Of a DNA stretch of 64,000 bases, positions 21,560 to 57,308 are shown piece after piece (the first letter of the stretch is position 1; each line of letters begins with the position of its first letter). Location of the stretch: the NCBI GenBank assembly GCA_010909165.1, contig VJWM01000106.1, positions 992,001 through 1,056,000 on the forward strand, given 5' to 3'. The position numbers and the translations under genes are program-made. This stretch comes from Anthoceros angustus. Lineage: Eukaryota; Plantae; Anthocerotophyta. Under the pieces are notes generated by a model, which saw nothing but the letters and a program-made list of their open reading frames with translations, had not been told where the DNA came from and made no database searches.

Positions 21560-22921
21560 CTTCTTGTTAAATTCTGTGGCTATCTGTCCAGACACAGTTT
21601 GCACCTCCATCTGCTCCAGATACCGCTCTTTCTGGTGAAGATCCGAGCTCTTTGCAGCCAAAGGCACCTTGAACCTCTTGACCACCGTGGGAAAGGATGT
21701 TCCTGCCGAGACATTTATTACCTGCGCATCATAAGACCGAGCTCCACCTGCACTGAATGGGGGTGGTGCAATCTGCACATAAACCGTTGGCATCGGTTCC
21801 AATTCTAGATTCTTCCGGAAGCCAGTCTCTCCAGAAGGTGATGCAAGGACTCGTAGAACTTGCCCCTCAAGTGCTGCACATTCCGAGAGGGAATTTTCCT
21901 CCACTCCGGAATCTCAGGCTGCACTGCTTCCCAAACGTACTTGTCAGGGCGGCCGCTTGGTTTGCCAAGGCCGCTCAACGTACTGGATATGGTCTCGTTG
22001 GAGACCGCCACCACCTTCAGCGGTATGTCGCTGATGTTGTCGAAGAGCTCCAGCTGAAGCCACCCTCCTTCCACCTCTTTCTGGAATTCCCTCACCATCT
22101 TCTTAGTAGACTTGTTCAGGTGACAGAATGTGTAGGTTGAAATTTTGCACCGATCACGCAAGGTCCGTAGGTGAAGGCCAATGTCCCGATGCCGCGTGTC
22201 CCCATCCAGATATCTGTCTCCACCTCCGTCATGAAACCGTTTGCCATGGCAAGGAGCGTCACCAACGTGAATCAATACACGATTAGCAGCCTGCCAGCTC
22301 AAATTGGCCACATCCTCAAGGCCACTGAAAACGTTCTCCGCTAGATCGCCGCCACCAGATGCTTTCACATCTGACAGAGCCCTGACGAAGACGCTGCGTT
22401 CACCTCGAAAGCTGGTGGTGAAAGCACATGACTTGTGGGAGGCATCGTCGTAATCCCGGTAAGACGCGAACGCCACACGCAGCTTGGACTGAGGATGTGC
22501 TTGCGCGATGCCCTCCGCAACAGAAGCCACCTCATCCTTCACCATATCTGGGCCCTGTAGCATACACCAGGAAGGCAAGGTCCTGCGCCTGCGCCTTGCG
22601 GATGATGATGCTGAGCTATGCCTTGCGGTTCTGCGTTGCTTCCTTGTGATGCCATTGTAGGTACAACAGCCGCTCATCATCGAGAGCCAGCTCAGCTTCC
22701 ACTTTGGCCAGCTCCTGGCGTGTTTGAGAGGACGCAGGGTCCCGGGCCGTGCCGCTGCTGGGACTGCTTCTGCTTCTGCTGGTCGTCACAGTCGGTGAGA
22801 AGTTTGCTTCAAGCATCTCCAGTTTTAGCTTCAGCTTCTCCAATTCCAACCTCGTACTGATCCTGGTTGCGGATCTGCCCTCACAAGAATTCTCCTCAAT
22901 GGCCGGCAGTCGGGACGCCAT
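21560..22921 (-). pseudogene. Coiled-coil + vWA + alpha-kinase paralogue 1 (kinase truncated after the N-lobe)
   Basis: N-terminal coiled coil (22616-22927), then an in-frame TAG and 'QDLAFLVYATG' (altered MIDAS). vWA body 'LRVAFASYRDYDD...GGGDLAENVFSGL...LIHVGDAPCHG'. Kinase start 'VQIAPPPFSAGGAR...VVKRFK...EVQTVSGQIATEFN'. Frameshifts present; the C-lobe is replaced by a tandem repeat. Confidence 0.85.
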
Positions 22922-23189
22922 GGCCACACAGCTTGCTGCAATTGCGAATAAATGCGAGGATGTTGGAGCGTGTTTCAGTACACAGCTGCGCCCCCTTCAG
23001 CAGCAGCGGATGCAAGCTGCTGGAAGTGCTAACGACCGCCGCCAATGGCGGTCCCGCCGCCGCCAGAGCCTCTAATCGACCTGTAAACTGGAACCCATGC
23101 CATTGAGGCCGACGGTGCGGACGCCGAGGCCAGGTCGTCACGGGGAACGTCCGTCCGGTTCTGGATTGGACATCCACTCAATACATGCA

Positions 23190-23750
23190 TGAATGGACAT
23201 GCCCCATCCTGGTGACCTGCCAACTGCCCACATGCAACCTTGAATTCGTCGAAGATGGATCACCCTGGAGATCGTATTAAAGGCGTTCTCAACGTCCACT
23301 TGCAGGGCAGGACCCCGCAAAAGCCAAGGATTCGTAGCTCCTCGGAGTAGCAATACTAAATTGGTGAAAGGAGATGGCCTCCCTCACAGCAATAGAGTGA
23401 AACAAAAATGCCTCCCTCACAGCAATAGAGTGTACCCCGGAACGCAAAAATGCCTCCCTCACAGCAATAGAGCGTACCCCGGAAGTGGGCTTTTCTACAG
23501 CCAACAACCGACTTGGCCCCCTAAACTTGAGAAATGCGAAAAGGAGTCTCCCCCTAGCCACATAGGCTAGCATAATGAACAATTCCAAAAAAACCGCTGG
23601 AGGGTCCTCGGGAGTGAAGCAGTCCCGGAGGTGGTCATAGACCATTCCCGACATACCCCTGAAGAAAAAGGCAAAGCAGAGGTCAGGGCCCGACCAAAAC
23701 CGGCCTGTCGAGAGTAAAGGGCTCCCTTTTGTTATTACTGCAGGAGCCCA
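23190..23750 (-). mobile_element. Fragment of CRE-like (early-branching, RLE-type) non-LTR retrotransposon reverse transcriptase
   Basis: Minus-strand translation gives 'GMSGMVYDHLRDCF', 'SRLLAVEKPTSGVRSIAVREAFLR', 'HQFSIATP' and 'LQVDVENAFNTISR', which are RT motifs 0-3 typical of CRE/SLACS-like elements. It contains an internal triplication. Confidence 0.65.
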
Positions 23751-23764
23751 ACCACCAAGCAAAG

Positions 23765-24090
23765 GACTGCAAAACAAGACTAGCCGGATACAGATCCAAA
23801 AAGAAAAGTGAAAGGCTTCAAAGAACTGCAAGACAAGACTAGCCGGGATATAGATCAAAAAGAAAAGTGAAAGGCTTCAAAGAACTGCAAAACAAGACTA
23901 GCCGGGATACAGATGCAAAAAGAAAAGTGAAAGGCTTCAAAGAACTGCAAAACAAGACTAGCGGAGATACAGACCCAAAAAGAAAAGTGAAAGGCTTCAA
24001 AGAACCGCAAAACAAGACAAGCCGGAATATGGATCCAAAAAGAAAAGTGAAAGGCTTCAAAGAAGCGCAAAACAAGACTGGTAGACTTTA
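23765..24090. repeat. ~60-bp tandem repeat x~5 (aaaagaaaagtgaaaggcttcaaagaactgcaaaacaagactagccggatacagatcc)
   Basis: Direct inspection. Recurs at ~41170-41480 and ~55995-56300. Confidence 0.9.
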
Positions 24091-24559
24091 AGAAGGAAAT
24101 CATCCAAGCCAATCAAGTCAGCCGGAAGGACCAAGAACATATCTTCGTGTACTTCACGCAAGAGGTCGTGTACTTGATCGTTGACTCGGTGAAGCTATAA
24201 TCTTCTTTAATTTCTCAAGCTATGAGGTATTGCTAGTGGGACACTCGATGACATGCCTCCAAATATTTTGACCAAAGGATTGACTTTAGATAAACATATT
24301 ACGTTTAGCGATATGCTAGGCTTAAGAGAGTAATATCGATGTGTTGAATGGGAATATTAAAATCTATACGATTGGTGCAACACATCCCATATTAAAGTTC
24401 ACTTAATAAGTCCTACAAGTGTATAGGACAAAATGGACAAAAATAGGATCTAATAAGTTCATACCCACCGAGATTGTCAAGGCGAACGGCTAAATATGTA
24501 TGCATAGCACACCTTTTCAGCATATGGAGGCTCGGATACCATGCCTGTTTGCCCCACCC

Positions 24560-25125
24560 GAATATACGCATGTCTCCATATTCATCATCAAAATCATGAA
24601 ACGCCTGCCATGGCAAGGAGCGTCCGGAATGTAAAGTAGAACGTAAAGAATGTAAAGAATGCTTTACATTCCGGAGGTTCGAGAGCGTGGAGCCTTAGCC
24701 TTCCATCTCAAATCAGCCACGCTCTCGAAGCTTAAGCCACTGAAAACATCTTCCCCGTATCGCCGCCGCCGCCAGTTGCTTCCACACCCAATGGCCTTCA
24801 TACTCATGCTCCTGTAGCATCCACCAGGAACGCCACGTCCAGCGCCTGCTCCTTCTGGATGACAATGCTGAGCTCAGCCTGGCGGCTCCGCGTTGCCTCT
24901 TGGTTATGTCGTTCCAGGGACGAAAGCCGCTCATTCCTAGCAGCGAGCTTGGTTTTCACCATAGCCAGCGCGCTTGTGCTGGAAGTACTTCTGCTTAGCC
25001 GCTCGTCTTAGTCGATGACGTGCTCATTCCAGCCATGGCCAGTTCGAGCCTCCGCTTCCTCAACGATCTGGCCTCCCAATAGGCCTCCGCATCTCCGGCA
25101 GCTAGGAGCTCCACGAGTCCGCCAT
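24560..25125 (-). pseudogene. Internally deleted coiled-coil/vWA paralogue 2 (no kinase)
   Basis: Remnants 'LSIVIQKEQALDVAFLVDATG', 'EDVFSGL...VADLRWKA' and 'DAPCHG.RFHDFDD', with stops and deletions. Confidence 0.75.
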
Positions 25126-25670
25126 CGCCAGACCTGGATCCACCTCCCAGATGCGGCAATTGCGAACGAGTTCGAGGACGGTCGCGCGCATTCCTTTTCG
25201 CCTGATTTCTACTTGAGCCTACGCCCCATTCTGCTTCAAACGTACGAGCGTGCGGGGCAGTCAGGTAACTGATTGTTACTGATCTTACTGCTTCAGCCGT
25301 GAAGCCATTAAAACAAGTAATGGACGGAGGGATTTGCGAATGTTACGGGATCATTACAAAGTTTCTCAAGGACCGGGTAACGTTCCACGTTCTACTCAAA
25401 TTCTCCCGCATCCACCGGGGTTCACATCCTGCGGTGCTCTGGAGACTATGAATCCTCCGTAAATTCTAGCTGTTTGCATTCTGGAAAAGCTGCCGCACTA
25501 CAAACACAAACGACGGTTCGGGTAAAGCGATGCAAGGATGGCTGCTATCATCTACCCAAAATTTGGAAGCATCCAATCCAGCAAAGTAAGCACTTAACAA
25601 CCCTACAAGCCTCTGCCTTACAATCCCTACACCCCTCTAAAAATCCCTACAACCATCTGCCTTAACATGC

Positions 25671-27434
25671 CTATGCCAGCACTGTACCTGACTTAGTGTA
25701 ACCATTCATGCTCGGCTTCAGCTTTAGAGCTCGGCACACATCGTTGCATTTGTGCGTTTTGTAAAAGAGGTCAAATCCCGCTTCTCCCAAGTTTGTCGTG
25801 GTGAAGCGCAACAAATCCTTGCTGTGTATGGCTGGATCACACAGCCAAAACTCGTTCTCGCCGTTTGAACTTCGCACTCGCACGCCCTGGAGGTCAGTCA
25901 CCATGAGGTGACCTTTCGACCTTCATGCGTCCAGTGACTAAACGCCTGCAAGGTAGCAGCGTAATCTGCCGTATTTACATATCCAGCATTATTCGAATAC
26001 TTTATCCATGTCCCTTTCAGAAATTTCTCCTTGTTGTAGAAAAGGCATGGCCCGCCGGATGCACCTTCCACATTGAGAGTTGTTACCATGGAGAACGTCA
26101 CCTGCTTAGCCCCTACCAGGTTCCTCATCTTCTCGTTAAATTCTGTGGCCATCTGTCCAGACACAGTTTGCACCTCCATCTGCTCCAGATACCGCTCTTT
26201 CTGGTGAACATCCGAGCTCTTTGCAGCCACAGGCACCTTCAACCTCTTGAGCACTATGGGAAAGGATGTTCCTGCCGAGACTTTCGTTACCTGCGCATAA
26301 TAAGGCCACCGCATAGCTCCACTTCCAATGAACGGATGTGGTGCTATCTGCACATAAACCGTTGGCATTGGCTCCAGTTCAAGATTCTTGCTGGAAGCCA
26401 GTCTCTCAAAAGCTGATCCAAGGAGCCGTAGAACTTGCCCCTCAACTGCTGCGCAATCCGAGAGGGAATTTTCTGCCAATCTCGGGGAATCCCAGGCTGC
26501 ACCGTCTCGAAAACGGACGTGTCGGGCGGCCTTTCGCTTTGCCAAGACAGCTCAATGTACTGGATATGGTCTCGTTGGAGACCGCCACCACCTTCAGCGG
26601 TATGTCGCTGATGTTGTTGAAGAGCTCCTGCTGTATCCACCTCCCTCCACCTCTTTCTGAAATTCCGTCACCATCTTCTTAGTAGACTGGTTGAGGTGAC
26701 AAAATGTAGCTTGAAATTTTGCACCGATCGCGCAATGTCCGAAGCAGAACGCCGATATCCCGAACCAGCTTGTCCCCGTCGGCGTACCTGTCTCCTACCC
26801 CGTCATGAAACCGCCTGCCATGGCAAGGAGCGTCACCAATGTGAATCAACACACGATTAGCTGCCTGCCAGCTCAAATTGGCCACATCCTCTAGGCCACT
26901 AAAACATCTTCCGCATCATCCAGGCCAGCGCCGGATGCCTTCACTTCTGACAGGGCTGTGACCAAGACGCTGCCATCACCGCGGAAGCTGGTGGTGAAGT
27001 CACACCTCTTGTAAGGGGATCGTCGTAATCCCGGTAAGACGCGAACGCCACTCGCAGCTTGGACTGAGGATGTGCTTGCGTGATGCCCTCCGCCACAGAA
27101 GCCACCTGGCCTTGCGGATGATGATGCTCAGCTCAGCCTTGCGCTTCTGCGTTGCATCCTTGCGGTGCCGTTCCAGGTAAGACAGCCGCTCATTCTTGGC
27201 TGGGAGCTGAGCTTCCACTATGGCCAGCTTCTGGCGCGTTTGAGAGGATGCAGCGTCCCTGGCCGCGCTGCTGCTGGCACTGCTTCTGCTGCTGCTGCTG
27301 CTTGTCTCACTCGATGAGATGTTTGCTTCGAGCTTCTGCAGTAGCAGCTTCAGCTTCTCCAATTCCAACCTCGTTCTGGTCCTGGTTGCGGATCTCCAAT
27401 AGCTCTCCTCAATGGCCGGTAGTAGGAACGCCAT
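25671..27434 (-). pseudogene. Coiled-coil + vWA + complete alpha-kinase (eEF2K/MHCK/VwkA-like) paralogue 3
   Basis: Contains all alpha-kinase hallmarks: 'PFIGSGAMRWPY', 'IVLKRLK', 'KYSNNAGYV', 'LQAFSHWTHE', 'MVTDLQGV', 'LCDPAIHS', 'NLGEAGFDLF', 'HKCNDVC'. vWA 'LIHIGDAPCHG' is present. The MIDAS segment is deleted with a frameshift near 27110. Confidence 0.9.
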
Positions 27435-27774
27435 GGAGTTTGCTGCAATTGCGAATAAATGCTAGGTTGTTGGAGTTTTTCACTACGCAGCTCTGCCCCT
27501 TCTGCAGGCGGCGGAGGGAAGCTTCTGGAAATGATAACGGCCGCCGCCAACGGCAACCCGTTGCCGCTAGACCATTAAGAGCCTGCAATCGAGCTGTAAC
27601 CTGCAACGCTGCTTAAGGGCAAAGCCTGCAGGCCATTGGGGCCAAGAGTACGGACGGCGAGGCCACGTCATCACGGTGAACGAACGAACGTCCTCCGGAT
27701 TTGAACAGGATGTCACTCCACACATTACATGCATGCATGTATGTCCTCCTTCGGCGCTAAAGCTCAAGGTGGCC

Positions 27775-28140
27775 TCATCCTGTTGAGGGTGTGACTGTGG
27801 GTATTCTTGCAGACTCACAGCTTCCCCTAGGCACAAATCCATCGTGCTCTTGGAGGCCATTGACTGGTCACTGAAAATCGTGATTCACAACTTCGATTTG
27901 GGTTCCAAAGTGCTTACAACAACGCACTGTTCAACCACGATACGTTTCAAGCTTGGGATGTAATAAAATCGAAGCACATACAAGAAAGTTCAACCACGAT
28001 ACGTCTCAAGTTCGGTATGTATTCAAATCGAAGAACATACAAGCAACGGGTGTCAGCACATGTTCGAGATTGGACGGACTCCAGATCTTCTAATTCCCAA
28101 GACAAGGTTCCTTGGCAGTACAGCTATGAGGCCTGATGAC
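27775..28140 (+). pseudogene. Duplicated 3' fragment of the GT92 gene
   Basis: High nucleotide similarity to ~20040-20365 (catcctgtt.agggtgtgac...aggcacaaatccatcgtgctcttggaggccattgac...aattcccaagacaagg), with a small internal duplication. Confidence 0.85.
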
Positions 28141-28259
28141 TGAAAAGAGCAGTAAGGCCTGATGACTGAGAAAGGCAGTGATGAGACTGCTGCTATCATG
28201 TACCGCAAAATTTGAAAGCATGCGCAGCCATCTAGCGAAGCAAAACATAATCCACAACT

Positions 28260-29230
28260 CTACGTGCCTCTGCCATACGATCCCACTGCCTTTAGCTTCA
28301 GAGCTCGGCACACATCGTTGCACTGGTGTGTTTCGTAGAAGAGCTTAAATCCTGATTCTCCCATGTTCGTCTGGGTGAAGCGTTGTAAATCTTGCTGTAG
28401 ATGGCCGGATCACTGAGCCAAAACTCGTCCTCCGACCCTGGGTTCTGCGCTCGCACACCCTGGAGGTCACCCACGATAAGGTGACCTTTAGACCTTTCAT
28501 ACGTCCAATGAGTGAACGCCTGCAAGGAATGAGCGTAATCGGACTTATCCACATATCCGCTATTGCAGGAATACTTCTTCCATGATCCTTCGAGAGGTTT
28601 CTCCATGTTGTAGAATTTGCACGGCTCCCCGATGCACCTTCCACTTGGAGGGTTGTGACCACGGAGAACGTCACCCGTCTTGCCCTGGCAGGTTCCTCGT
28701 CCTATCATTGAATTCGTCGGCCAATCGTGCACTCACTACTTGCACCTCCATTTGCGCTAGATACCGCGCCTTATCCAGGCGTGCAGGCCCCGGCACCTTG
28801 AAATTCTTCACCACCATCGGAAATGGTGTCCCTGACGAGTCATTCATTACCCGGGCATGAAAAGGCCACCTATTAGCCCTTCATTGCTGAATGGGTTTGG
28901 AGCAACCTGAAGAGCAATTGCTGCGATAGCTTCCAGTTCAAGATTCATGCGGGATTCCAGTCTGGCCAAAAGGTCATCCAAGGAATCGTAAACCTTGAAA
29001 CTGAATTGCTGCGCCTTGTGATAGGGAATCGTTTCCCAGTTCGGTTCCACTACTGGTTTCGGCGCCGCAGTGCCCATGTCGGGGCTTCACGTTGTTTCTT
29101 GGTGACTGGTTATGTCGTTCCCGGTAGGGCAGCCGCCTCCAATACCAGTCCTGTATTTGCAAATCCGGCCTCACTGTAGCTCCGCGATGCACAGCAGCTA
29201 GCTAGAACTTCCAGGAATCCGCCGTCGCCA
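28260..29230 (-). pseudogene. Alpha-kinase paralogue 4 (vWA deleted)
   Basis: 'QVAPNPFSNEG', 'MVVKNFK', 'KKYSCNSGYV', 'LQAFTHWTYERSKGHLIVGDLQGV', 'LSDPAIYS' and 'HQCNDVC' spread over several frames. Only a short remnant of the N-terminal region lies upstream. Confidence 0.88.
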
Positions 29231-29945: not shown

Positions 29946-32900
29946 TGTTAAAATGATAGCATTAGCCCTTAGGGCACGCTGAAGAGCAAGGCTACAAGCA
30001 GAACATTTAGAAAATATCAGATCACTTAGAGAGCAAAGGAATCTTAAAGAAGCAGGAGAAAACTTGTGGCATTACGGTTGGAACGTTACCTGCGGTGTCC
30101 TGCTGCTAATTGGGGAAGAAATTCTCTTAAGAGGTCACATTGACCTAACAGAGTACGATTGGTCTTATCTGCAAGTTGAATTTTTGTTTCACCAACCATG
30201 AAGAAACAGTTCACTACAACCCCGGCGTAATTGCCCCAATTTCCCATGAAACTCAAGCGACAAGTCACATCTTGCCTAGGAAACCTAAGCCGCCAACATG
30301 GCCTCTACCAACTTCCATCCGCAAAAGACATAGAAGACACCCACAATTCCGTAATTGAAAATTGAATGGACCAACCACATGCCCACATAAAATCTCCCCA
30401 ACGAACGTCTGAGTCCTTATTACTATGCAAATAGAAAATATCTACCCTACTCGAAACAGTTTTCGAGTCTAGAAACCAGACACACACAAGATGTCAACCT
30501 CTCACCTCTCCTTGTCCAAGGAGGACAAGTTCGATGGCAGCAACACAATTTCCATACTGGAAATTGGGATGACCAACATCCTCAAAGAGCGCAAGCTGGG
30601 CTACGTCGGGGTAGGCAACCCCGCCCCCATACCTTTCCCAGCAGAACCCAAAGAAGACAAAGACGATCGGAGGACCACAACCAACAAGCTAAAATGTTCT
30701 CATGCAAAGCATGAAGCAAAACACCGTCCAAGAATTCGAGGGGCACACGGTAGCGGCTGACACCTGAAATCTATGACGCCCACGACATTATGCATACAAT
30801 ACACACCATCAAGAGCTACCTCGGCCTCCGCATGGCGAGGGTGACCATGTGGACCACCATGCAATGGTGTTTGAGCACAGCGGTGAAGTTCCGGGCCCTT
30901 GGCTTCAACATCCCGAGGAGCTCCTAGTAGCAGTGCTATCAACACTAGCGGAATCGTGGGTGGCCGTGCAAAGCTTACAGGGCATTCAACCTCTAACAAC
31001 AAGGTACTGCTATGCTTACGAGGAAGGCCGCGGGAAGGTCTTCGCTCACGCCGGAGAACCCTCCTCCAGCAGCGCCTTCTTCACAGAAAGAGGGAGGCAA
31101 CGAGGTCGCGGACGAGGCAATTTCCGGGGAACAAACCGCGGCACCCCTAGAGGACGGGGCTTCTTTCCCAGCCGTGGCAGAGGTACACACAACCCTTCAT
31201 GGAAGCCCGTCTGCGGCTACTGCAAAATCCCTGGACACACATACGAGGAATGCCGGAAAAGATTAGGCTCTTCTAACAACTACAGAAATCAACATTCGGA
31301 TGGCCTTAACCATGCAAATGACACTCCAAGGCTTTCTTTACTCACGTTAGCCATGAAACACCACCTCAAAGACACCTCCTCTTGACTCTTGCAGCTTTTT
31401 TCAGCACAAGGAACAAGCACATGTACATAGATTGAGTCAGACATGACTCCCCACAAGGAATACTTCACAAGCCTCAACCCTACAAAGACAATCCAACTTT
31501 GTTAGCCTTGGTGACAACTCCAAACACCACATAATAGGGTCGGATCAGAGACCTAAGCGTCCAACCTAATTCAACCATGCAAATTTCGACGTCCTCTTAG
31601 TACCGGACTCACCAAAATCTCTTTTTGCGTAAGGTTGATCAGGATGCTACGTTTGTTTTGGAGATGGCCATTGCGTCATAGAAACCCCACAAGGCGATCC
31701 GACACAGGCGACCTTAAGAACGATGATTTGTACCACCTACGGGTTAGCCACCCTCTTCACTCTCTGGCACGAGACAAAATCGACCTTTCTCGCACGCCAC
31801 TTGGGCACATGAACGTCAGAATGCAGGATATGATTAAAACACAAGCTGCTCATGGTATTCCTCTTACCAATATCGAGGACTTCGGTATCTGCGACGCATG
31901 CTCCCTCGGCAAGAGTCACCGCTCAGCCTTCCCTAAGGCATCCTACACACGAGCTACCAAGCGGCTTCAGTTAGTGCATTCCGACCTATGCGGGCCTTTC
32001 AAACGATCCCTATTTGGATATACATATTTCATGCTGGTAATCGACGACTTCACTCGATTCACCGTTATATACATCCTCAAGAACAAGGCCCAAGCATTCC
32101 CATGCTTTAAAGAGTACAAGATATGGTCGGAGAAGCAACGGTGACACCTTACTGCCTCGGATCGAGCGGTGGTGAATCTTGCTCCACCCAATTTTCCACC
32201 TTCCGCAAGGAACACGACATTCATCGGATTACCACTCCACACACCTCTCCTTGTCCAAGGAGGACAAGTTCGATAAAACACAATTTCCATACTGGAAATT
32301 CGGGATGACCAACATCCTCAAAGAGCGCAAGCTGGGCTACGTCGGGGTAGGCAACCCCCGCCCCCATACCTTTCCCAGCAGAACCCAAAGAAGACAAAGA
32401 AGGCGGGAGGACCACAACCAACAAGCTAAAATGTTCTCATGCAAAGCATGAAGCAAGGCACCGCCTCGAGGGACAGCCACGGTGACACTGACACCGCATG
32501 AAATCTATGACGCCCACGACATTATGCATACAATACACACCATCAAGAGCTACCTCGGCCTCCGCATGGCGAGAGGTGACCATGTGGACCACCATGCAAT
32601 GGTGTTTCGAGCTGACGGTGAAGTTCCAGGCCCTTGGCTTCAACATCCCCGAGGAGCTCCTAGCAGCAATTCTGCTATCAACACTACCGGAATCGTGGGT
32701 CAGCGTCGTGCAAAGCTTACAGGGCATTCAACCTCTAACAGTCAACAAGGTACTCAGTGCTATGCTTACAGAGGAAGGCCGCAGGAAGGTCTTCGCTCAC
32801 GCCGGAGAACCCTCCTCCAGCAGCGCCTTCTTCACAGGAAGAGGGAGGCAACGAGGTCGCGGACGAGGCAATTTCCGGGGAACAAACCGCGGCACCCCTA

Positions 32901-41169: not shown

Positions 41170-41480
41170 GGCGCAAAACAAGACTAGCGGATCTGATCCA
41201 AAAAGAAAAGTGAAAGGCTTCAAAGAAGCGCAAGACAAGACTAGCGGGATATAGATCCAAAAAGAAAAGTGAAAGGCTTCAAAGAAGCGCAAAACAAGAC
41301 TAGCCGGATACGGATGCAAAAAGAAAAGTGAAAGGCTTCAAAGAACGCAAAACAAGACTAGCGGGATATAGATCCAAAAAGAAAAGTGAAAGGCTTCAAA
41401 GAACCGCAAAACAAGACTAGTAATATGGATCCAAAAAGAAAAGTGAAAGGCTTCAAAGAAGCGCAAAACAAGACCGGTAG
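41170..41480. repeat. ~60-bp tandem repeat x~5 (unit 2 copy)
   Basis: Same unit as 23765-24090. Confidence 0.9.
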
Positions 41481-41969: not shown

Positions 41970-42533
41970 ATATACGCATGTCTCCATATTCATCATCAAA
42001 ATCATGAAACGCCTGCCATGGCAAGGAGCGTCCGGAATATGTAAAGTAGAACGTAAAGAATGTAAAGAATGCTTTACATTCCGGAGGTTCGAGCGTGGAG
42101 CCTTAGCCTTCCATCTCAAATCAGCCACGCTCTCGAGGCTTAAGCCACTGAAAACATCTTCCCCGTATCGCCGCCGCCGCCAGTTGCTTCCACACCCAAT
42201 GGCCTTCATACTCATGCTCCTGTAGCATCCACCAGGAACGCCACGTCCAGCGCCTGCTCCTTCTGGATGACAATGCTGAGCTCAGCCTGGCGGCTCCGCG
42301 TTGCCTCTTGGTTATGTCGTTCCAGGGACGAAAGCCGCTCATTCCTAGCAGCGAGCTTGGTTTCACCATAGCCAGCGCGCTTGTGCTGGAAGTACTTCTG
42401 CTTAGCCGCTCGTCTTAGTCGATGACGTGCTCATTCCAGCCATGGCCAGTTCGAGCCTCCGCTTCCTCAACGATCTGGCCTCCCAATAGGCCTCCGCTAT
42501 CTCCGGCAGCTAGGAGCTCCACGAGTCCGCCAT
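41970..42533 (-). pseudogene. Deleted vWA paralogue 2 (unit 2 copy)
   Basis: Near-identical to 24560-25125. Confidence 0.75.
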
Positions 42534-43078
42534 CGCCAGACCTGGATCCACCTCCCAGATGCGGCAATTGCGAACGAGTTCGAGGACGGTCGCGCGCATT
42601 CCTTTTCGCCTGATTTCTACTTGAGCCTACGCCCCATTCTGCTTCAAACGTACGAGCGTGCGGGGCAGTCAGGTAACTGATTGTTACTGATCTTACTGCT
42701 TCAGCCGTGAAGCCATTAAAACAAGTAATGGACGGAGGGATTTGCAGAATGTTACGGGATCATTACAAAGTTTCTCAAGGACCGGGTAACGTTCCACGTT
42801 CTACTCAAATTCTCCCGCATCCACCTGGGTTCACATCCTGCGGTGCTCTGGAGACTATGAATCCTCCGTAAATTCTAGCTGTTTGCATTCTGGAAAAAAG
42901 CTGCCGCACTACAAACACAAACGACGGTTCGGGTAAAGCGATGCAAGGATGGCTGCTATCATCTACCCAAAATTTGGAAGCATCCAATCCAGCAAAGTAA
43001 GCACTTAACAACCCTACAAGCCTCTGCCTTACAATCCCTACACCTCTAAAATCCCTACAACCATCTGCCTTAACATGC

Positions 43079-45665: not shown

Positions 45666-46640
45666 CTACGTGCCTCTGCCATACGATCCCACTGCCTTTA
45701 GCTTCAGAGCTCGGCACACATCGTTGCACTGGTGTGTTTCGTAGAAGAGCTTAAATCCTGATTCTCCCATGTTCGTCTGGGTGAAGCGTTGTAAATCTTG
45801 CTGTAGATGGCCGGATCACTGAGCCAAAACTCGTCCTCCGACCCTGGGTTCTGCGCTCGCACACCCTGGAGGTCACCCACGATAAGGTGACCTTTAGACC
45901 TTTCATACGTCCAATGAGTGAACGCCTGCAAGGAATGAGCGTAATCGGACTTATCCACATATCCGCTATTGCAGGAATACTTCTTCCATGATCCTTCGAG
46001 AGGTTTCTCCATGTTGTAGAATTTGCACGGCTCCCCGATGCACCTTCCACTTGGAGGGTTGTGACCACGGAGAACGTCACCCGTCTTGCCCCTGGCAGGT
46101 TCCTCGTCCTATCATTGAATTCGTCGGCCAATCGTGCACTCACTACTTGCACCTCCATTTGCGCTAGATACCGCGCCTTATCCAGGCGTGCAGGCCCCGG
46201 CACCTTGAAATTCTTCACCACCATCGGAAATGGTGTCCCTGACGAGTCATTCATTACCCGGGCATGAAAAGGCCACCTATTAGCCCTTCATTGCTGAATG
46301 GGTTTGGAGCAACCTGAAGAGCAATTGCTGCGATAGCTTCCAGTTCAAGATTCATGCGGGATTCCAGTCTGGCCAAAAGGTCATCCAAGGAATCGTAAAC
46401 CTTGAAACTGAATTGCTGCGCCTTGTGATAGGGAATCGTTTCCCAGTTCGGTTCCACTACTGGTTTCGGCGCCGCAGTGCCCATGTCGGGGCTTCACGTT
46501 GTTTCTTGGTGACTGGTTATGTCGTTCCCGGTAGGGCAGCCGCCTCCAATACCAGTCCTGTATTTGCAAATCCGGCCTCACTGTAGCTCCGCGATGCACA
46601 GCAGCTAGCTAGAACTTCCAGGAATCCGCCGTCGCCACAG
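45666..46640 (-). pseudogene. Alpha-kinase paralogue 4 (unit 2 copy)
   Basis: Near-identical to 28260-29230; ORFs 45704-46012, 45751-46254 and 46254-46484. Confidence 0.88.
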
Positions 46641-47355: not shown

Positions 47356-50300
47356 TGTTAAAATGATAGCATTAGCCCTTAGGGCACGCTTCATTATTTA
47401 AGTCACTAGAGCTCAAGCGCCACCTTGAATGGTCACCATTCAAAACGGTTACGCACAACACCGCTTGGGCAATGGCCAAGCCTACATTCTGAACATTCTT
47501 TGTACTCTTATGCAATCTAATGTAAGATCCTCGAACGACGCTCTTCACATGGTATCGAGGACGCCGCCTCGCTCTACCTATCCAGCCACCCCATGACATC
47601 CATACGCGTCTCCTCATCATGCCTGGAGCCATAAGGCGCCAACGCCTCGAAAGAAGAGCAAGGCTGCAAGCAGAACATTTAGAAAATGTCAGATCACTTA
47701 GAGAGCAAAGGAATCTTAAAGCGGAGAAAACTTGTGGCATTACGGTTGGGCGTTACTGCGGTGTCCTGCTAATTGGGGAAGAAATTCTCTTAAGAGGTCA
47801 CATTGACCAACAGAGTACGATTGGTCTTATCTCAAGTTGAATTTTTGTTTCACCAACCATGAAGAAAGCGATTCACTACAACCACGGGCGTAATTGCCCC
47901 AATTTCCCATGAACTGCCAAAGAAGTCACATCTTGCCTAGGAAACCTAAGCCGCCAACATGGCCTCTACCAACTTCCATCTGCAATAGACATAGAAGACA
48001 CCCACAATTCCGTAATTGAAAAATTGACAGAACTGGACCAACCACATGCCCACATAAAATCTCCCCAACGAACGTACAAAGTCCTTATTACTATGCAAAT
48101 AGAAATATCTACCCTACTCAGAAACACAGTTTTCAGAGTCTAGAAACCAGACACACACAAGATGTCAACCTCTCACCTCTCCTTGTCCAAGGAGGACAAG
48201 TTCGATGGCCAGCAACACAATTTCCATACCTGGAAATTCAGGATGACCAACATCCTCAAAGAGCGCAAGCTCTGGGGCTACGTCGGCGGGGTAGGCAACC
48301 CCCCAGTCCCCATACCTTTCCCCGCAGCAGAACCCAAGAAGACAAAGACGATCGAGGACCACAACCAACAAGCTAAAATGTTCTCATGCAAAGCATGAAG
48401 CAAGGCACCGCCCGAGCTCGAGGGGGACATCTGCATGACATAACAAGATGAAATCTATGACGCCCACGACATTATGCATACAATACACACCATCAAGAGC
48501 TACCTCACCTCCGCATGGCGAGGGTGACCATGTGGACCACCATGCAATGGTGTTTCGAGCCCGGTGAAGTTCCGTGCCCTTGGCTTCAACATCCCGAGGA
48601 GCTCCTAGTAGCAATTACGCTATCAACACTACCGAATCGTGGGTCGGCGTGCAAAGCTTACGAGGGGCATTCAACCTCTACCAACTTCCATCCGCAAAAG
48701 ACATAGAAGACACCCACAATTCCGTAATTGAAAAATTGACAGAATCGACCAACCACATGCCCACATAAAATCTCCCCAACGAACGTCTGAGTCCTTATTA
48801 CTATGCAAATAGAAATATCTACCCTACTCAAACAGTTTGAGTCTAGAAACCACACACACAAGATGTCAACCTCTCCCTCTCCTTGTCCAAGGAGGACAAG
48901 TTCGATGGTCCAACAACACAATTTCCATACCTGGAAATTCGGGATGACCAACATCCTCAAAGAGCGCAAGCTGGGGCTACGTCGGCGGGTAGGCAACCCC
49001 AGTCCCCATACCTTTCCCAGCAGAACCCAAAGACAAAAGGCATCGAGGACCACAACCAACAAGCTAAAATGTTCTCATGCAAAGCATGAAGCAAGGCACC
49101 GTCAAGGCTCGAGGGGGACAGCCACACAGTACGCAGCAATGGACACATCTATGACGACGTGTGCATACAATACACACCATCAAGAGCTACCTCGGCCTCC
49201 GCATGGCGAGGGTGACCATGTGGACCACCATGCAATGGTGTTTCGAGCTGACGGTGAAGTTCCAGCCCTTGGCTTGTCCCGAGGAGCTCCTAGTAGCAAT
49301 TACGCTATCAACACTAGCTAATCGTGGTACAGGCAAAGCTTACGGGCATTCAACCTCTAACAATTCAACAAGGTACTCGGTGCTATGCTTACGAGGAAGG
49401 CGCAGGAAGGTCTTCGCTCACGGAGAACCCTCCTCCAGCGCCTTCTTCACGGAAGAGGGAGGCAACGAGGTCGCGGGCGAGGCAATTTCAGGAACAAACC
49501 GCGGCACCCCTAGAGGACGGGCTCCTTTCCCACCGTGGCGAGGTACATACAACCCTTCATGGAAGCCCGTGCGGCTCGCAAAATCCCTGACACACATACG
49601 AGGAATGCCTAAAAGATTAGGCTCTTCTAACAACTACAAATCAACATTCGATTGGCCTTAACCATGCAAATGACACTCCAAGGCTTTCTTTACTCACGTT
49701 AGCCATGAAACACCACCTACAGCACACCTCGGCTCTTGTAGCTTCCTTTTTTCAGCACAAGGGAACATGCAGTACATAGATTCCGAGCTCAGACATGACT
49801 CCCCACAAGGAATACTTCACAAGCCTCAACCCTACAAAGACAATCCAACTTTGTTAGCCTTGGTGACAACTCCAAACACCACATAATAGGGTCGGATCAG
49901 AGACCTAAGCGTCCAACCTAATTCAACCATGCAAATTTTAGACGTCCTCTTAGTACCTGGACTCACCAAAAATCTCTTTTCGTAAGGTTGATCAGCCGGA
50001 TGCTACGTTTGTTTTGGAGATGGCCACTGCGTCATAGAAACCCCACAAGGCGATCTGATTGCCACAGGCGACCTTAAGAACGATGATTTGTACCACCTAC
50101 GGGTTAGCCACCCCTCTTCACTCTCTGCTGGCACACAGAGACAAAATCAGACCTTTCTCTGGCACGCCCGGCTTGGGCACATGAACGTGCAGAGAATGCA
50201 GGATATGATTAAAACACAAGCTGCTCATGGTATTCCTCTTACCAATATCGAGGACTTCGGTATCTGCGACGCATGCTCCCTCGGCAAGAGTCACCGTCGG

Positions 50301-53300
50301 CCTTCCCTAAGGCATCCTACACACGAGCTACCAAGCGGCTTGCTTAGTGCATTCAACTATGCGGGCCTTTCAAACGATCCCTATTTGGATATACATATTT
50401 CATCTTGTGTAATGGCGACTTCACTCGACTCACCGTTATATACATCCTCAAGAACAAGGCCCAAGCATTCCCATGCTTTAAAGAGTACAAGATATGGTCG
50501 GAGAAGCAAGCGGTGACACCTTACTGCCTCGGATCGACGGCGGTGGTGAATCGCTCCACCCAATTTTCCACCTTCTGCAAGGAACACGCATTCATCGATT
50601 ACCACTCCACACACCTCTCGTGAGAATGGGGTCGGAGCGGATGAACCGAACTATACAAAATTGCTAGCCATGCTTATTCATGCAGCTCAAATCCTAGGCG
50701 AGGCAAAGATGTCTGTCTACATTGGTAATCGCACAATTACCTCATCCCTCTCACAGGCACTCCATATACTGACAGGCAATAAGCGGATTTATCCTCCTTG
50801 CGGGTCTTGGTGCTCCCTGTATGCTCATGTTCCCAAGGTTATCGTGGACAAAACTCGACAACAAGGCACAAAAGCTTTTTGCTCGGCTTCACCAACGGAT
50901 CAAAGGATACAAGCTAATCCACCCTCAAACGCACAAGGTGACCCATTCTCGACGTCACATTTCTTGAGGATATCGACCACCACATCCGGTGGGAGTTTCT
51001 TCACAATCAGAGCGATGACGACAATGGTTCCATGGACTTCTCGCTCGCCACTTTCCAAAGACAACCGCCAAACCTCACCGCCCTCCACTCGGCCCGTGCC
51101 ACCACGCCGGCCCCTACACCCCTTATCACACCTCAGACACACCACAACCCATCACATTCGGAGATTTCGACACGATCTTGGCGCCCCTCACTGCCTCGGC
51201 CCCTCAAGCCCCAAGAGCGCCATGGCTCTGAGCGGCGGGGGCAGGTGCTCGCAGATCCGATCCGGAGGCGATGACCTCCATTATAGCAGCCCGCAGTGCG
51301 CACAGGACACCCTCAATCCGACAATTTTCCACACGCCGGAGAGCTCGGCGTGACGCCGCCACAACAGACGGGCACACCCCACCCGGCGCATGAGCACCAC
51401 TCGCCTTCCTCACCAAGATCCCCATGGCTGCAAACCGGCGCTCTCAACAATCAGCCGCGATCACTTGCAGGGCGGACACCTCGATTTGGGACCGGATCGA
51501 CGGCGGTGGTGAATCTTGCTCCACCCAATTTTCCACCTTGCAAGGAACATTCGGCAGATTACCACTCCACACCTCTCGGAGAATGGGGTGTGAGCGGATG
51601 AACCGAACTATACAAAATTGCGGGCTAGCCATGCTTATTCATGCAGCTCAAATCCCTCGGCGAGGCGATAGATCTTATCTACATTGGTAATCGCACAATT
51701 ACCTCATCCCTCTCACAGGCACTCCATATGCAACTTGGACGGGCAATAAGCGGATTTATCCTCCTTATGGTCTTGGTGCTCCGTGTATGCTCATGTTCCC
51801 AAGGTTATCGTGGACAAAACTCGACAACAAGGCACAAAAGCTTCATTGCTCGGCTTCACCAACGGATCAAAGGATACAAGCTAATCCACCTCAAACGCAC
51901 AAGGTGACCCATTCGCGACGTCACATTTCTTGAGGATATACGACCACATCCGGTGGGAGTTTCTTCACAATCAGACAACGATGGCAATGGTTCCATGGAC
52001 TTCTCGCTTGGCCACTTTCCAAAGACAACCGCCAAACCTGACCTCGGCCCTCCACTCGGCCCGTGCCACCACGCCGGCCCCTCGCACGGCCCCTTATCAC
52101 GCCCGCTGGACACACCACAACCCATCACATTCGGAGATTTCGACACCGTCTTGGCGCCCCTCACCCTCAGCGCCCTCAAGCCCCAGCGCCATGGCTCTCA
52201 GGAAGGGGGCAGTGCACTCGCGGGACCGCGAGATGGAGGCGATGACCTCCATTATAGCAGCCCCCAGCGCACAGGACACCCTCACAATTTCGATCCACGG
52301 CCGGAGAGCTCGGCGTGACGCCGCCACGCAGGCGGGCACACCCCACAAGGCCGCGAGCGGCACTCGGTCTTCCTCACCGGCATCCCCATGGCTGCAAACC
52401 GGCGCTCTCAACAATGGCGCCCGATCACTTGCGGAGGACACCTCGACGCAGGACCGGATCGGACCTCTGTATGGCACACAAGCTATATCGGCACTCGAGG
52501 CATGGAGGCATGACACCAAGACAGGCATGGTACTTATTCACAACTCAACTCTCCTACACTTACAGATCGGCTCTTCTCCACACCGCAGCTCAAGTCGGCC
52601 AACAAATTGCTCAACAAACATTTGACATCATCCCGATTCCCAAAGGCAAACCAAAATATATACTTTGAGTTTTCTAATTATAATAATCCGGATATTCAAT
52701 CAACAATACTCAAGACGACAACAATATTTCGATCCTCATTTTGAGAGCATACATGAGGTTATTCCACATCAACTGATACCACCCAGCCTAGGCGTAGGCA
52801 ATCCCGGCTCCAATGCAGTCGACATAGATATTCTCCTACTAATGGCAAGATCCTAAGAGCAATATAGCATATTGTCTTAATGCAAACAGACCAATTTGTC
52901 CTCGCTAGCTATCGAGGCAATAACACCACGGAAGGAACATTGGAAGCAAGCAATCAGTCGAACTAGAATCCCTAGAAGCCAATAAAACTTGGACTCTAAC
53001 TCTTCTACCTAAGGATAGAAAATTGGTAGGAAGTAAGTGGACATTTAAATTAAATTAAATGTCTTTAGTATAGAAAGATATAAAGCTAGACTAGCTAAGG
53101 GATATTCACAAAAATATGGTTTTGACTATGACGAAACCTTTAGTCCTGCTCAAAATAACTTCACTTAGAATCCTCTTAGCTTTGGCATCTCATCACAACT
53201 ATGAACTAATGCAACTTGATATTAAGATGCTTTTCTATATGGAGACCTTGATCACATTATTTATATGGAGATTCCGAAGGATACATGTTCGTGATAAGAG

Positions 53301-54698
53301 AAAGCATAATGCTTGCTTATTATTGAAATCCTTATACGGACTTAAGCAAAGCGCCATGAAATGGTATCACAAGTTAGATGTCACCTTAAGGAGCTAGAGT
53401 TCACTAAGCTAAACTCGAGATAGCAACATTTATATCAAGAGACTAGGTAATGAATTCATTGTCTTAGGAGTATACGTAGATGACATAGTTCTTATGTCTA
53501 ATACTAAGGCTATTTTAGAAAATACCAACTATGCTAGCTAAGCGCTTCTCTATGACAACTTGTAGAGAACTTTCTTCTGCTTAGGCATCAGTTCTAAGAG
53601 ATAGAAACGCTAGAAGCATCCTTATTCACCAATCCAAATACATCCAAGAGATTCTAACCAAGTTTAAGATGTTAGACGCTAAACCCATCTCTACACGCAT
53701 GGAAATGAATCTTAAGCTTAGCAGGGAAGCGGACCAACAGGATGATACCTCCAATACTACTCCTCCTCCTTATTTCTCAGCGGTCGGGAGTCTTATGTAT
53801 CTTATGGTTTGCACCAGACCAGATCTATCCTATTCAGTGGGAGCCTTGTCACAATTCCTATCAGCCCCTACTCAAGCTCATTGGAAAGCGGTTAAGAGGA
53901 TACTCAGATACTTAAGAGCAACCCCGGACCTAGGGCTGCTCTACCAATCACATATCAAACAAGGAGAGCCTTTACAACTAGAAGGCTTTAGCGACGCCGA
54001 CTGGGCCGGCAACGTCAACGATAGGAAGAGCACAAGCAGCTATGTATACCTACTCGGAGGCACAGCAACAAGCTGGAGCAGCAAGAGGCAGTGTGGTCGT
54101 GACTCACCAACAGAGGTGAGTATTGCTCTTTAACACATGCTTGTAAAGATGGACTTTGGCAACTTCTACAACTTTCGGAGTTAGGCGAAATGCAAAGGAT
54201 CCCCAGGCCTCTCTATTGCGATAACCAGAGTGCTATTGCACTCACGTATAATCCAAAGTTCCACGCGGGACGAAGCACATAGAGGTGCAATTTCACTTCA
54301 TAAGGCAAGTAGTTGATGAAGGCAAGTTTATAGTTGTTTATTGCGACGAGATGACGCGGACGTTTACGAAGCACTCAGCTCGATCAAGCATCAAGAACAC
54401 GTGAAGAATATGGGACTAAGAAGAGTCTCGGTTACACACAAAGCTTAGCAAAGTTTGCACACATATATATATATATATAGCCTAAGGACTACATGCTAAG
54501 TGGGAGTGTTAAATGATAGCATTAGCCCTTAGGGCACGCTTCATTATTTAAGTCATTAGAGCTCAAGCGCCACCTTGAATGGTCACCATTCAAAACGACA
54601 AGACAACACCGCTTGGGCAATGGCCAAGCCTACATTCGAACATTCTCTCGACTCTTATGCAATCTAATGTAAGATCCTCGAACGATCGCTTCTTCACA
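47356..54698 (+). mobile_element. Ty1/Copia LTR retrotransposon, family 1, copy B (both LTRs)
   Basis: LTRs 47356-47549 and 54507-54698 (TG...CA), TSD TCTTC, PBS TGGTATC(A)GAG (tRNA-iMet-like) at 47550 and PPT AAGTGGGAG. gag 'KFDG..FHTWKFRM', 'WHARLGH', YVDD and 'FSDADWAG' are present. Confidence 0.96.
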
Positions 54699-55309
54699 TC
54701 TTCTGAATATCTTCGAAATCAATAGGATTGAAAACCGAGGATTATATAAGCCCAAGCCCGCCTAGGTATAGATATAATGTGTAAAGTGTGTCTGCAGGTG
54801 CTTATGTTCTTAGGACCTAATATGGTTAGTGCATATAACCCATATCGTATTGAGAGTTATATTCTCTCTCAATAAACTGACTCTTGTCTTTATCTAGTTG
54901 CATCCGCTGATGTGTATGAATATATGGTCCTTCCATCCTTAGCGTATAAATAAAGTTGTTGTTGTTGTTGTTGTATCAATATGGGTGTAATATTGGTGTG
55001 ACATCCACACTAAAACCGGAGGACGCTCGATCAATCAAAACCCGGAATGATCGCTCGCTCCCCATTCCCCGTGATGACGTGACCTCGGCATCCGCTCGCT
55101 TGACCCCCAAATGTCCAGGCTTTGCCTTAAACGCGCGCGTGGCGTGACCTCGGCGTCCGCATTTTGACCCTGATGGCTTGCGGCTTTGCCTTAACGCGGC
55201 GTGGCCTCCGTGCTTTGCCTTAACGCAGCGTGGCCTCCGTGCTTTGCCTTAACGCAGGTGTTATAGGTCGATTGCGGTGCTCCAGAGCGGCAGCGGGGTC
55301 TGCTGGCGG

Positions 55310-55560
55310 CCGCTATCATTTCGAAGTTTCCTCCGCCACCGCAGAAGGGGACCGTGAGTGAAACAAGCTCCAACAACCTAGCATTTCCGCATCCTCTCAA
55401 ACGCGCCAAGTCGCCATAGTGGAAGCTCACAGACCCAAGAATGAGCACGCCTTACTCGGAATGGCACCACAAGGATGCAACGCAGCGCAAGACTGAGCGA
55501 GCATCGCATCCGCAAGGCGCAGCTCGACCTTGCCTTCCTCGTGGATGCTACATTGAGCAT
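55310..55560 (+). pseudogene. Inverted 5' vWA fragment, paralogue 5 (second copy)
   Basis: Homologous to 40480-40730; 'IRKAQLDLAFLVDATLSM'. Confidence 0.7.
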
Positions 55561-55985
55561 GCTACTTGCAAGGCGGTGGGACTCCAGGACCCCCAAAAGC
55601 CACGGATTCAGAGCTCCTGAGTAGCAATACTAAATTGGTGAAAGGAGATGGCCTCGAACTACTTTTTGAGCCGGATGGCAATGTTGCGTGACAAGCTGCA
55701 AAATGCCTCCCTCACAGCGATAGAGCGTGCCGGAGTGGGCTTTTCTACAGCCAACAACCGACTTGGCCCCTAAACTTGAGAAATGCGAAAGAGTCTCCCC
55801 AGCCACAGTGGCTAGCATAATGAACAATTCCAAAAACATTTGGACGGGTCCTGGAGTGAAGTAGTCCCGAGGTGGTCATAGACCATTCCAAATACCCTAA
55901 AGAAAGACGAAAGCAGGTAAGGGCCACCAAAACCGGCTGTCGAGAGTAAAGGGCTCCCTTTGTTATTATCGCAGAGCCCAACCAC
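55561..55985 (-). mobile_element. CRE-like non-LTR RT fragment (unit 3 copy)
   Basis: Homologous to 40731-41160. Confidence 0.6.
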
Positions 55986-55994
55986 CAAGCAAAG

Positions 55995-56300
55995 GGCGCA
56001 AAACAAGACTAGCCGGACAGATCCAAAAGAAAAGTGAAAGGCTTCAAAGAACAAGACAAGACTAGCCGGATATAGATCCAAAAGAAAAGTGAAAGGCTTC
56101 AAAGAACGCAAAACAAGACTAGCCGGGATACGGATGCAAAAAGAAAAGTGAAAGGCTTCAAAGAACTGCAAAACAAGACTAGCGGGATCTGGACCCAAAA
56201 GAAAAGTGAAAGGCTTCAAAGAACCGCAAAACAAGACTAGCCGGAATATGGATCCAAAAGAAAAGTGAAAGGCTCAAAGAAGCGCAAAACAAGACTGGTA
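55995..56300. repeat. ~60-bp tandem repeat x~5 (unit 3 copy)
   Basis: Same unit as 23765-24090. Confidence 0.9.
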
Positions 56301-56789
56301 GACTTTAAGAAGGAAATCATCCAAGCCAATCAAGTCGACGGAAGGACCAAGAACATATCTTCGTGTACTTCACCGCAAGAGGTCGGTACTTCAAAGACGT
56401 TGACTCGGTGAAGCTATAATCTTCTTTAATTTCTCAAGCTATGAGGTATTGCTAGTGGGACATACACGATGTGATGACATGCCTCCAAATATTTTGACCA
56501 AAGGATTGACTTTAGATAAACATATTACGTTTAGCGATATGCTAGGCTTAAGAGAGTAATATCGATGTGTTGAATGGGAATATTAAAAATCTATACGATT
56601 GGTGCAACACATCCCATATTAAAGTTCACTTAATAAGTCCTACAAGTGTATAGGACAAAATGGACAAAAATAGGATCTAATAAGTTCATACCCACCGAGA
56701 TTGTCAAGGCGAATCTAAATATGTATGCATAGCACACCTTTTCAGCATATGGAGGCTCGGATACCATGCCTGCTTGCCCCACCCGAATA

Positions 56790-57308
56790 TACGCATGTCT
56801 CCATATTCATCATCAAAATCATGAAACGCCTGCCATGGCAAGGAGCGTCCGAATGTAAAGTAGAACGTAAAGAATGTAAAGAATGCTTTACATTCGGAGG
56901 TTCGAGAGCGTGGAGCCTTAGCCTTCCATCTCAAATCAGCCACGCCTCAAGCTTAAGCCATCGAAAACATCTTCAGACGCCGCCGCCAGCTTGCTTCCAC
57001 ACCCAATGGCCTTCATACTCATGCTCGTAGCATCCACCAGAACGCCACGCCCGTACCGCTCGGATGACAATCGAGCTCACTGGCGGCTCCGCGTTGCCTC
57101 TTGGTTGTCGCTCAGGATCGAAGCTCATTCCTAGCAGCGAGCTTGGTTTTCACCATAGCCAGCGCTTGTGCTGGAAGTATGCCAGCCGCCTTAGTCGATG
57201 ACGTGCTCATTCCAGCCATGGCCGATTCGAGCCTCGCTTCCTCAACGATCCGGCCTCCCAATAGGCCTCCGCTATCTCCGGCAGCTAGGAGCTCCACGAG
57301 TCCGCCAT
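56790..57308 (-). pseudogene. Deleted vWA paralogue 2 (unit 3 copy)
   Basis: Homologous to 24560-25125. A Copia of family 2 is inserted just upstream. Confidence 0.7.

Follow-up and report, generated by a model that had tools for sequence, protein, structure and literature searches.

The cluster of coiled-coil, vWA and alpha-kinase genes in the hornwort Anthoceros angustus raises the question of what these genes are, how they arrived in a land-plant genome, and whether they form a living, rapidly renewed array of the kind known for plant immune receptors. The window analyzed here is a stretch of 64,000 nucleotides (contig VJWM01000106.1, positions 992,001 to 1,056,000). The best overall explanation, to which we give a probability of about 0.7, is that these are VwkA-type alpha-kinases of an old green-lineage family with vertical inheritance. 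Local duplication beside a GT92 gene would have produced five paralogues, most of which have died since, and the multiplicity of a 15-17 kb piece may be partly very young duplication and partly assembly noise.

Organization of the array

A sequence-only reading of this window had proposed about ten loci from about five paralogues on both strands. The analysis confirmed ten loci, which belong to five paralogues (A to E); only fragment E lies on the plus strand. The features are as follows (D', B', C' and E' are repeats; coordinates are those of the window):

18412-20469, plus strand: GT92 glycosyltransferase gene, intact, tail to tail with A
21555-22921, minus strand: paralogue A, pseudogene comprising a coiled coil, a Ser-rich linker, a vWA domain and the kinase N-lobe
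24578-25140, minus strand: paralogue D, coiled coil and vWA stub with an internal deletion, relic
25671-27434, minus strand: paralogue B, coiled coil, partial vWA domain and an alpha-kinase that retains every catalytic and zinc motif
27774-28153, plus strand: decayed copy of the GT92 3' end, between C and B
28260-29077, minus strand: paralogue C, alpha-kinase of ~270 aa that consists of the kinase alone, has an in-frame ATG of its own and retains the catalytic motifs
29946-39857, plus strand: Copia LTR element 1, TG..CA ends, 5-bp target duplication TCTTC
40389-40730, plus strand: paralogue E, inverted 5' relic without a start codon, ending directly after DLAFLVDATLSM
41976-42549, minus strand: D', repeat of D
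43079-44840, minus strand: B', repeat of B with the identical vWA deletion
45666-46484, minus strand: C', repeat of C
47356-54698, plus strand: second copy of Copia element 1, same insertion site, other stutters
55231-55561, plus strand: E', repeat of E
56780-57325, minus strand: D'', noisy third copy of D
57326-63953, minus strand: Copia LTR element 2 with a 5-bp target duplication (GGATC), which interrupts the 5' end of D'' and of no other D copy

PLS-type PPR genes are also present in the window and, together with the gene tree described below, point to a non-seed land plant. Copia elements sit between the loci, in agreement with the earlier description of the array as riddled with transposable elements. 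The first copy of Copia element 1 contains internal stutters of 1.7-1.9 kb and a shortened 5' LTR.

As assembled, none of the ten loci is intact. Paralogue A carries a stop at 22618-22616, a D to Y change in the MIDAS motif and a frame-breaking deletion near 22549, and it lacks the kinase C-lobe. The vWA domain of B is missing ~24 codons, comprising strand beta1 and the DxTxS motif, i.e. the metal-binding strand. Several small frame breaks are found in the assembled B, and 3-4 single-base breaks in C. A, D and E are dead and B is damaged. Instead of ten turning-over paralogues, the array shows local duplication and loss among five, at most two of which may code. Two alternative gene models were rejected: the end of A at an intron (the conserved site has no donor, and no C-lobe lies between A and the GT92 gene), and E as the start of an intact gene (the start codon is absent, and it stops at a repeat junction).

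Identity and domain architecture

The Pfam Alpha_kinase model (PF02816) matches pieces of B (E=1.2e-21, 78 bits) and C (E=4.3e-20, 73 bits; cut-off 21.3), which confirms them as real alpha-kinase genes. The VWA_4 match is weak (E=0.006) and falls on a piece of A. The proposed VwkA-type architecture is upheld by the collinearity of A and B with full-length relatives that score for both VWA_4 and Alpha_kinase; within this window, these two paralogues show the VwkA-type order, in which a single gene encodes a vWA domain followed by the alpha-kinase at the C-terminus. By fold, a Sphagnum relative matches eEF2K, MHCK-A, TRPM7 and ALPK1, as well as integrin vWA domains.

The catalytic lysine and glutamate, the DLQG and DP aspartates, the NxG loop and the zinc ligands H..H..C..C are all present in B and C, with DPAIY in place of DPAIH in C, and these two are the sole window copies with the catalytic residues kept. 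The motifs listed in the sequence-only reading occur at the places described, but none of the loci has the full set: the DLAFLVDAT-type motif is limited to fragments D and E (in A its first D is replaced by Y, and in B the strand is missing), and B and C alone carry the motifs of the kinase C-lobe. Accordingly, no full-length copy in the window retains an intact MIDAS, which is altered in A, a copy that also has a break, deleted in B, lost with the whole domain in C, and confined to fragments in D and E. The motif is intact in the relatives, and the DxTxS, GGD and IAD elements of the vWA metal-ion site are conserved across land plants.

From this anatomy, we infer that the intact protein would be a soluble Ser/Thr alpha-kinase, in which the variable arm, Ser-rich and with short coiled-coil repeats, may set self-association or location, and the vWA domain may bind a partner via its metal-ion site, binding that would gate the C-terminal kinase. 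Paralogues B and C could then be kinases that have escaped vWA control or in which this control has changed.

The same layout of N-terminal extension, vWA domain and C-terminal alpha-kinase is found in Dictyostelium VwkA and in related proteins of fungi, protists and invertebrates, and Sycon and amoebozoan proteins share motifs with the plant family. In contrast to VwkA, the plant genes group in a separate clade, have a repeated coiled-coil arm and occur in local clusters with domain loss. The alpha-kinase fold and catalytic motifs are also common to human ALPK1, eEF2K, the TRPM7 kinase and Dictyostelium MHCK-A, but the analysis revealed neither the sugar-binding domain of ALPK1 nor a channel, calmodulin-binding or WD40 part. 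The earlier comparison with the immune sensor ALPK1 holds for the common fold and for nothing beyond it; since the closest sequence with a solved structure belongs to an Entamoeba alpha-kinase, the fold is uninformative on immunity.

Distribution and origin of the family

The family was found in ferns, mosses, liverworts and chlorophyte algae (the named relatives are from Adiantum, Sphagnum, Physcomitrium, Ceratodon, Riccia, Calypogeia and chlorophytes), which does not support a hornwort- or bryophyte-specific family. Identity to these relatives over the B kinase piece reaches up to 50%, and searching for homologues of the vWA frame of A (proteins of 160-510 aa) turned up no close relative. 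Seed plants gave no match in the homologue searches, but these are lossy, one having missed a protein of its own query alignment; therefore, absences prove little, and absence from seed plants, Marchantia, lycophytes and streptophyte algae is unproven.

In a careful tree of 36 rows (LG+G4; long, partial and redundant rows omitted), A, B and C form one clade (99/97) that joins the ferns as its nearest relatives (97/98), then all land plants (100/99) and chlorophycean algae (96/92). The outgroups were the Sycon 'vwkA' and Synstelium proteins in place of Dictyostelium discoideum VwkA, and relative to them all plant genes group together. An earlier quick-search tree had the same shape. The position of the window copies, nested among land-plant genes next to chlorophyte algae, supports retention from an ancestor and speaks against recent horizontal gain; likewise, searches sensitive to close relatives only, one of them with a single protein as query, found no relative among viral and prokaryotic contigs.

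The genes of the relatives have full frames and 4-5 introns at positions common to mosses and liverworts, whereas the window copies are mostly broken and lack family introns 2-4. The term 'intronless' is borne out for these introns only; every window copy reaching the conserved site of intron 1 is broken at or across it. The missing introns, together with the poor polishing of the array compared with the clean PPR and GT92 genes, could be explained by a contaminant, a chimera or a recent transfer from a fungus or protist. We consider this explanation very improbable, because decayed GT92 3' fragments within the repeat unit tie the array to a host gene and make it native to a land-plant chromosome, the nesting among land-plant genes is strong, and a moss genomic copy (L010) likewise lacks introns 2-4. 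Both the identity as a VwkA-type alpha-kinase family and its old, vertical history in the green lineage are thus highly probable.

Repeats, assembly noise and selection

Half of the ten loci arise from the repetition of a single 15-17 kb segment, which contains D, B, C, a Copia element and E and occurs two to three times. Over 4.5 kb, only 1 substitution and 14 small indels separate B and C from their copies, so the copy number appears to be partly an effect of noisy assembly. There are 56-132 gap openings per 100 mismatches between segment repeats vs 0-10 between true paralogues, a signature of long-read error. An entirely artefactual origin of the repeats was rejected: Copia element 2 is found in D'' alone and its insertion site is empty in D and D', so the repetition is not wholly an artefact. 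True lesions and sequencing errors were told apart by context only. The single-base breaks in B and C are mostly located within short base runs or next to them, and these may be errors; the large deletions, stop and truncations in A, D and E are not products of read errors. This state of the array, with most copies dead and the multiplicity divided between duplication and assembly noise, is probable.

Pairwise dN/dS is 0.32 (0.20-0.47) for A-B and 0.47 (0.33-0.69) for B-C, and ranges by region from 0.23 to 0.69, never exceeding 1, at synonymous distances of 0.3-0.65 among paralogues. With values of 0.3-0.5, the diversifying selection anticipated from the sequence-only reading is not shown. The vWA domain, conserved as much as the kinase N-lobe (52% vs 53% identity), is not a hypervariable sensor.

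These data bear on the possibility of a live immune-type array, in which many intact sensor kinases would turn over fast and the roles of sensor and helper would fall to full-length and single-domain partners. It would account for the domain-loss paralogues (kinase-only C here, and a kinase-less head-to-head gene near a TIR-LRR gene in Ceratodon) and for a tandem array in Adiantum, and the single-base breaks of B and C would be compatible with it if they are errors. We regard it as unlikely, given lesions in A, D and E beyond what read errors make, the vWA deletion common to B and B', nearly identical repeats carrying the same lesions, and dN/dS below 1.

Possible roles

Some features of an NLR-like locus are present in this window, namely local gain and loss of paralogues with domain loss and transposons (three of the five paralogues are dead, and there are two Copia insertions). 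Similar clusters that have lost domains are found in Adiantum, Riccia and Ceratodon; in Ceratodon, a chromosome-9 copy is paired head to head with a kinase-less gene, and a TIR-LRR gene lies 5.7 kb away. This recurrence, in one case beside an immune gene, keeps defence plausible. No kinase-only gene like C was confirmed among the other relatives. Judged from this behaviour in genomes, intracellular surveillance is tentatively the most likely single role for the clustered copies. Against it are dN/dS below 1, the conserved vWA domain, an immune gene in only one of the six neighbourhoods of relatives (and none in this window), and the single Physcomitrium gene found in homologue searches (XP_024402664), which is alone among housekeeping genes and whose protein was seen in 113 Logan contigs.

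An alternative is a housekeeping kinase that acts like Dictyostelium VwkA, which locates to vacuole or Golgi membranes and is activated by Ca2+/calmodulin, properties known for Dictyostelium only (PMC2827801; PMC1420674). The working gene would be elsewhere in the genome, and the cluster would be duplication debris in a transposon-rich stretch. The short branches of the moss orthologues, their housekeeping neighbours, and the three dead paralogues of five with B damaged are all consistent with this proposal. Purifying selection on the B and C kinases over a long divergence with all catalytic residues kept, and independent local expansions in fern, liverwort and moss genomes, make it somewhat doubtful.

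A motile-cell gene for flagellated sperm or zoospores would explain the presence in algae, bryophytes and ferns and the apparent absence from flowering plants: all named plant matches are from lineages with flagellated cells, and the lossy searches gave none from seed plants. However, 113 Logan contigs are more than expected of a sperm-only gene, and VwkA relatives occur in the non-flagellated Dictyostelium and Neurospora (PMC1420674), so this role is improbable.

A plant kinase joined to vWA is known from wheat Lr9 (WTK6-vWA) and the grass kinase-vWA proteins; Lr9 confers resistance, and a decoy or sensor role was proposed (PMC10260399), a convergent case in favour of surveillance. These proteins have conventional receptor-like kinase domains, a C-terminal vWA domain and a separate origin, and the likeness is one of analogy or convergence rather than homology. 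A broader surveillance reading, in which non-seed plants would combine a conserved single-copy gene with fast-turnover clusters whose full-length, kinase-only and vWA-only partners serve as sensor and helper, is distinctly unlikely, as is its extension that seed plants lost this system and grasses evolved it anew in the form of kinase-vWA fusions like Lr9.

Significance

A 2005 survey reported alpha-kinases to be completely absent from green plants (PMC1261164). The family was described earlier as possibly new; we found no study of a plant alpha-kinase in the literature, but strictly it is not undescribed, as the Physcomitrium protein is already listed in RefSeq under the name alpha-protein kinase vwkA-like. 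With most copies dead and an unreliable assembly, the window is a poor handle on the family; what it contributes is a pattern of local expansion and domain loss that is seen again in other non-seed plants. The family, extending from chlorophytes to ferns and apparently lost in seed plants, represents an unstudied branch of the plant kinome that is testable at once in Physcomitrium.

Composition of the array

The coiled-coil, vWA and alpha-kinase genes of the window have the architecture of the Dictyostelium VwkA type, which is widespread in eukaryotes. A motif scan located the vWA and alpha-kinase motifs named by the sequence-only reading at 22.2-55.6 kb, and its estimate of about ten loci from about five paralogues agrees with the ten loci and five paralogues (A-E) identified by self-comparison and tblastn. 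Primes denote repeats of a paralogue.

Features of the window (paralogue loci from self-comparison and tblastn)
1835-2299, minus: coiled-coil and RING-H2 ORF, 154 aa (Pfam zf-RING_2, E=3e-11), upstream of the PPR genes
3515-13519: three intact tandem PLS-class PPR genes (986, 776 and 1234 aa) with E motif, ending shortly past the PGQSWW box; frames stop short of a full deaminase domain
21298-21555: 39-bp tandem repeats, starting at the cut-off of A a few codons past the family intron-4 site; possibly one terminus of an inserted element
21.5-29.1 kb, minus: A, D, B, C
40.4-40.7 kb, plus: E
Downstream of E, in this order: D', B', C', E', D''
23290-24100, 40754-41480 and 55585-56300: block containing 59-60 bp tandem repeats plus a short retroelement-like ORF without a Pfam match, bounding each repeat unit on the left; E stops precisely at the junction with it
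57326-63953, minus: Copia element 2

The Pfam kinase matches of the B piece (E=1.2e-21) and the C piece (E=4.3e-20) lie far over the cut-off. The vWA piece from A matches VWA_4 weakly (E=0.006), which is frequent for the vWA domains of this family.

State of the copies and introns

The state of each copy was read from a frameshift-aware alignment against an intact relative and from a motif table, and by these none of the ten loci is intact as assembled. Paralogue A has a stop within the coiled coil and a tyrosine (Y) in place of the first aspartate of the MIDAS metal-ion site with a frame-breaking deletion directly after it, and it lacks the kinase C-lobe. Only short relics remain of D and E, the latter missing its start codon. 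B, like B', has lost ~24 codons with vWA strand beta1 and the DxTxS motif, which correspond to the predicted first vWA strand (residues 23-31) in the model of a Sphagnum relative; its kinase retains all catalytic and zinc motifs. C encodes a kinase only, with an in-frame ATG at 29077 and its catalytic residues retained, and arose by internal deletion, since the upstream DNA still resembles the 5' end of D. Small indels account for the remaining breaks in B and C, most of them in or adjoining short base runs. Four different paralogues have a break at, or extending over, the phase-0 intron site that the family conserves after DxTxSMQ (22549, 27115, 24811 and 40730).

Four intron positions are common to mosses and liverworts. 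The description of the gene as intronless holds for introns 2-4, which are absent from the window copies; a loss of intron 1 as well is only possible, since its site is hit or spanned by a break in each of A, B, D and E. A moss-like genomic locus (L010) likewise lacks introns 2-4 and has an intron-like stretch before the intron-1 site; its 497-aa frame (341-1834) begins at that site, with no later intron.

Duplication and probable assembly noise

Over 4,489 columns, the only differences between the block of B and C and its copy are one substitution and 14 indels, each of 1-2 bases. Gap openings per 100 mismatches amount to 56-132 in all repeated blocks, versus 0-10 in true paralogue pairs (A-B, B-C, PPR genes), and the PPR and GT92 glycosyltransferase genes adjoining the array provide 11 kb of frames without a break. 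The Copia element between C and E occupies an identical site with the same TCTTC target duplication in both units, with differing internal stutters. We infer that these patterns stem from long reads left unpolished in the repeats. Pointing the other way, Copia element 2, with a GGATC target duplication, lies within D'' and is missing from both D and D', which requires no fewer than two different copies of this part. Its LTR ends are TA at both sides, not TG..CA, and its primer site is of the tRNA-iMet type; besides a GC-rich repeat leader it has a ~1.7 kb stretch ahead of gag, where a 112-aa ORF has no Pfam match.

Duplicated or over-assembled alike, the repeats share their lesions and do not count as genes evolving independently. 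For the five paralogues themselves, the proposed birth and death is real (dS 0.29 for A-B and 0.65 for B-C).

Origin in the host lineage

In both units, C and B are separated by decayed copies of the GT92 3' end, which indicates that local duplication of the GT92-kinase junction gave rise to the paralogues; these fragments also link the array to a host gene and speak against a contaminant or chimera. Homologue searches found relatives in Adiantum, Sphagnum, Physcomitrium, Ceratodon, Riccia, Calypogeia and many chlorophytes, with no seed plant among the named matches. In the maximum-likelihood tree, A, B and C form one clade (99/97) that groups with ferns and one transcript (97/98) within land plants (100/99), next to chlorophycean algae (96/92); a second tree is concordant. 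This nesting, together with the lack of matches in viral and prokaryotic contigs in searches sensitive to close relatives, disfavors the suggested horizontal acquisition, and vertical descent within the green lineage fits the sequences best.

Predicted fold and possible roles

The predicted fold of the Sphagnum relative runs from a helix through the vWA domain and a linker to the alpha-kinase (mean pLDDT 77, pTM 0.50, a value that leaves the packing of vWA and kinase domains unfixed), and has structural matches to eEF2K, MHCK-A, TRPM7, ALPK1 and integrin vWA domains. The MIDAS residues are retained across land plants in the motif table, and the N-terminal arm consists of Ser-rich coiled-coil repeats in variable number. 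The protein would be a soluble kinase whose activity is controlled when a partner binds its vWA domain in a metal-dependent way.

A surveillance role of the clustered copies has a probability of about 0.35. It is suggested by a tandem array in Adiantum nelumboides (members ~10 kb apart, one of them a short vWA-only model), by clustered copies in Riccia and Ceratodon, and by a locus on Ceratodon purpureus chromosome 9 (L004, 1-13083), where a full-length vWA alpha-kinase and a kinase-less paralogue of 527 aa (coiled coil and vWA) stand head to head, 5.7 kb from a TIR-LRR gene. Wheat Lr9, a kinase-vWA fusion of separate origin from plant alpha-kinases, can confer resistance (PMC10260399). However, dN/dS is elevated yet below 1 for A-B (0.32, 0.20-0.47) and B-C (0.47, 0.33-0.69), contrary to the expected diversifying selection, and vWA variability is not above that of the kinase N-lobe. 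The Physcomitrium gene, found in 113 Logan contigs, is slow-evolving and sits amid housekeeping genes, while Dictyostelium VwkA is calmodulin-activated and works at the contractile vacuole and Golgi. A housekeeping kinase whose clustering is neutral is only slightly less probable than surveillance, and a role in motile cells is improbable. One Riccia sorocarpa member (L003, 10001-13443) is annotated with ubiquitin-like repeats C-terminal to the kinase, which may be a gene-model fusion.

Alpha-kinases have been stated to be absent from green plants (PMC1261164). The sequence-only reading suggested that the family may be undescribed; we found no study of plant alpha-kinases in the open-access literature, but the Physcomitrium protein is already named alpha-protein kinase vwkA-like in RefSeq. 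The window thus holds a real cluster, mostly decayed and partly over-assembled, of a green-plant kinase family that is unstudied but catalogued.
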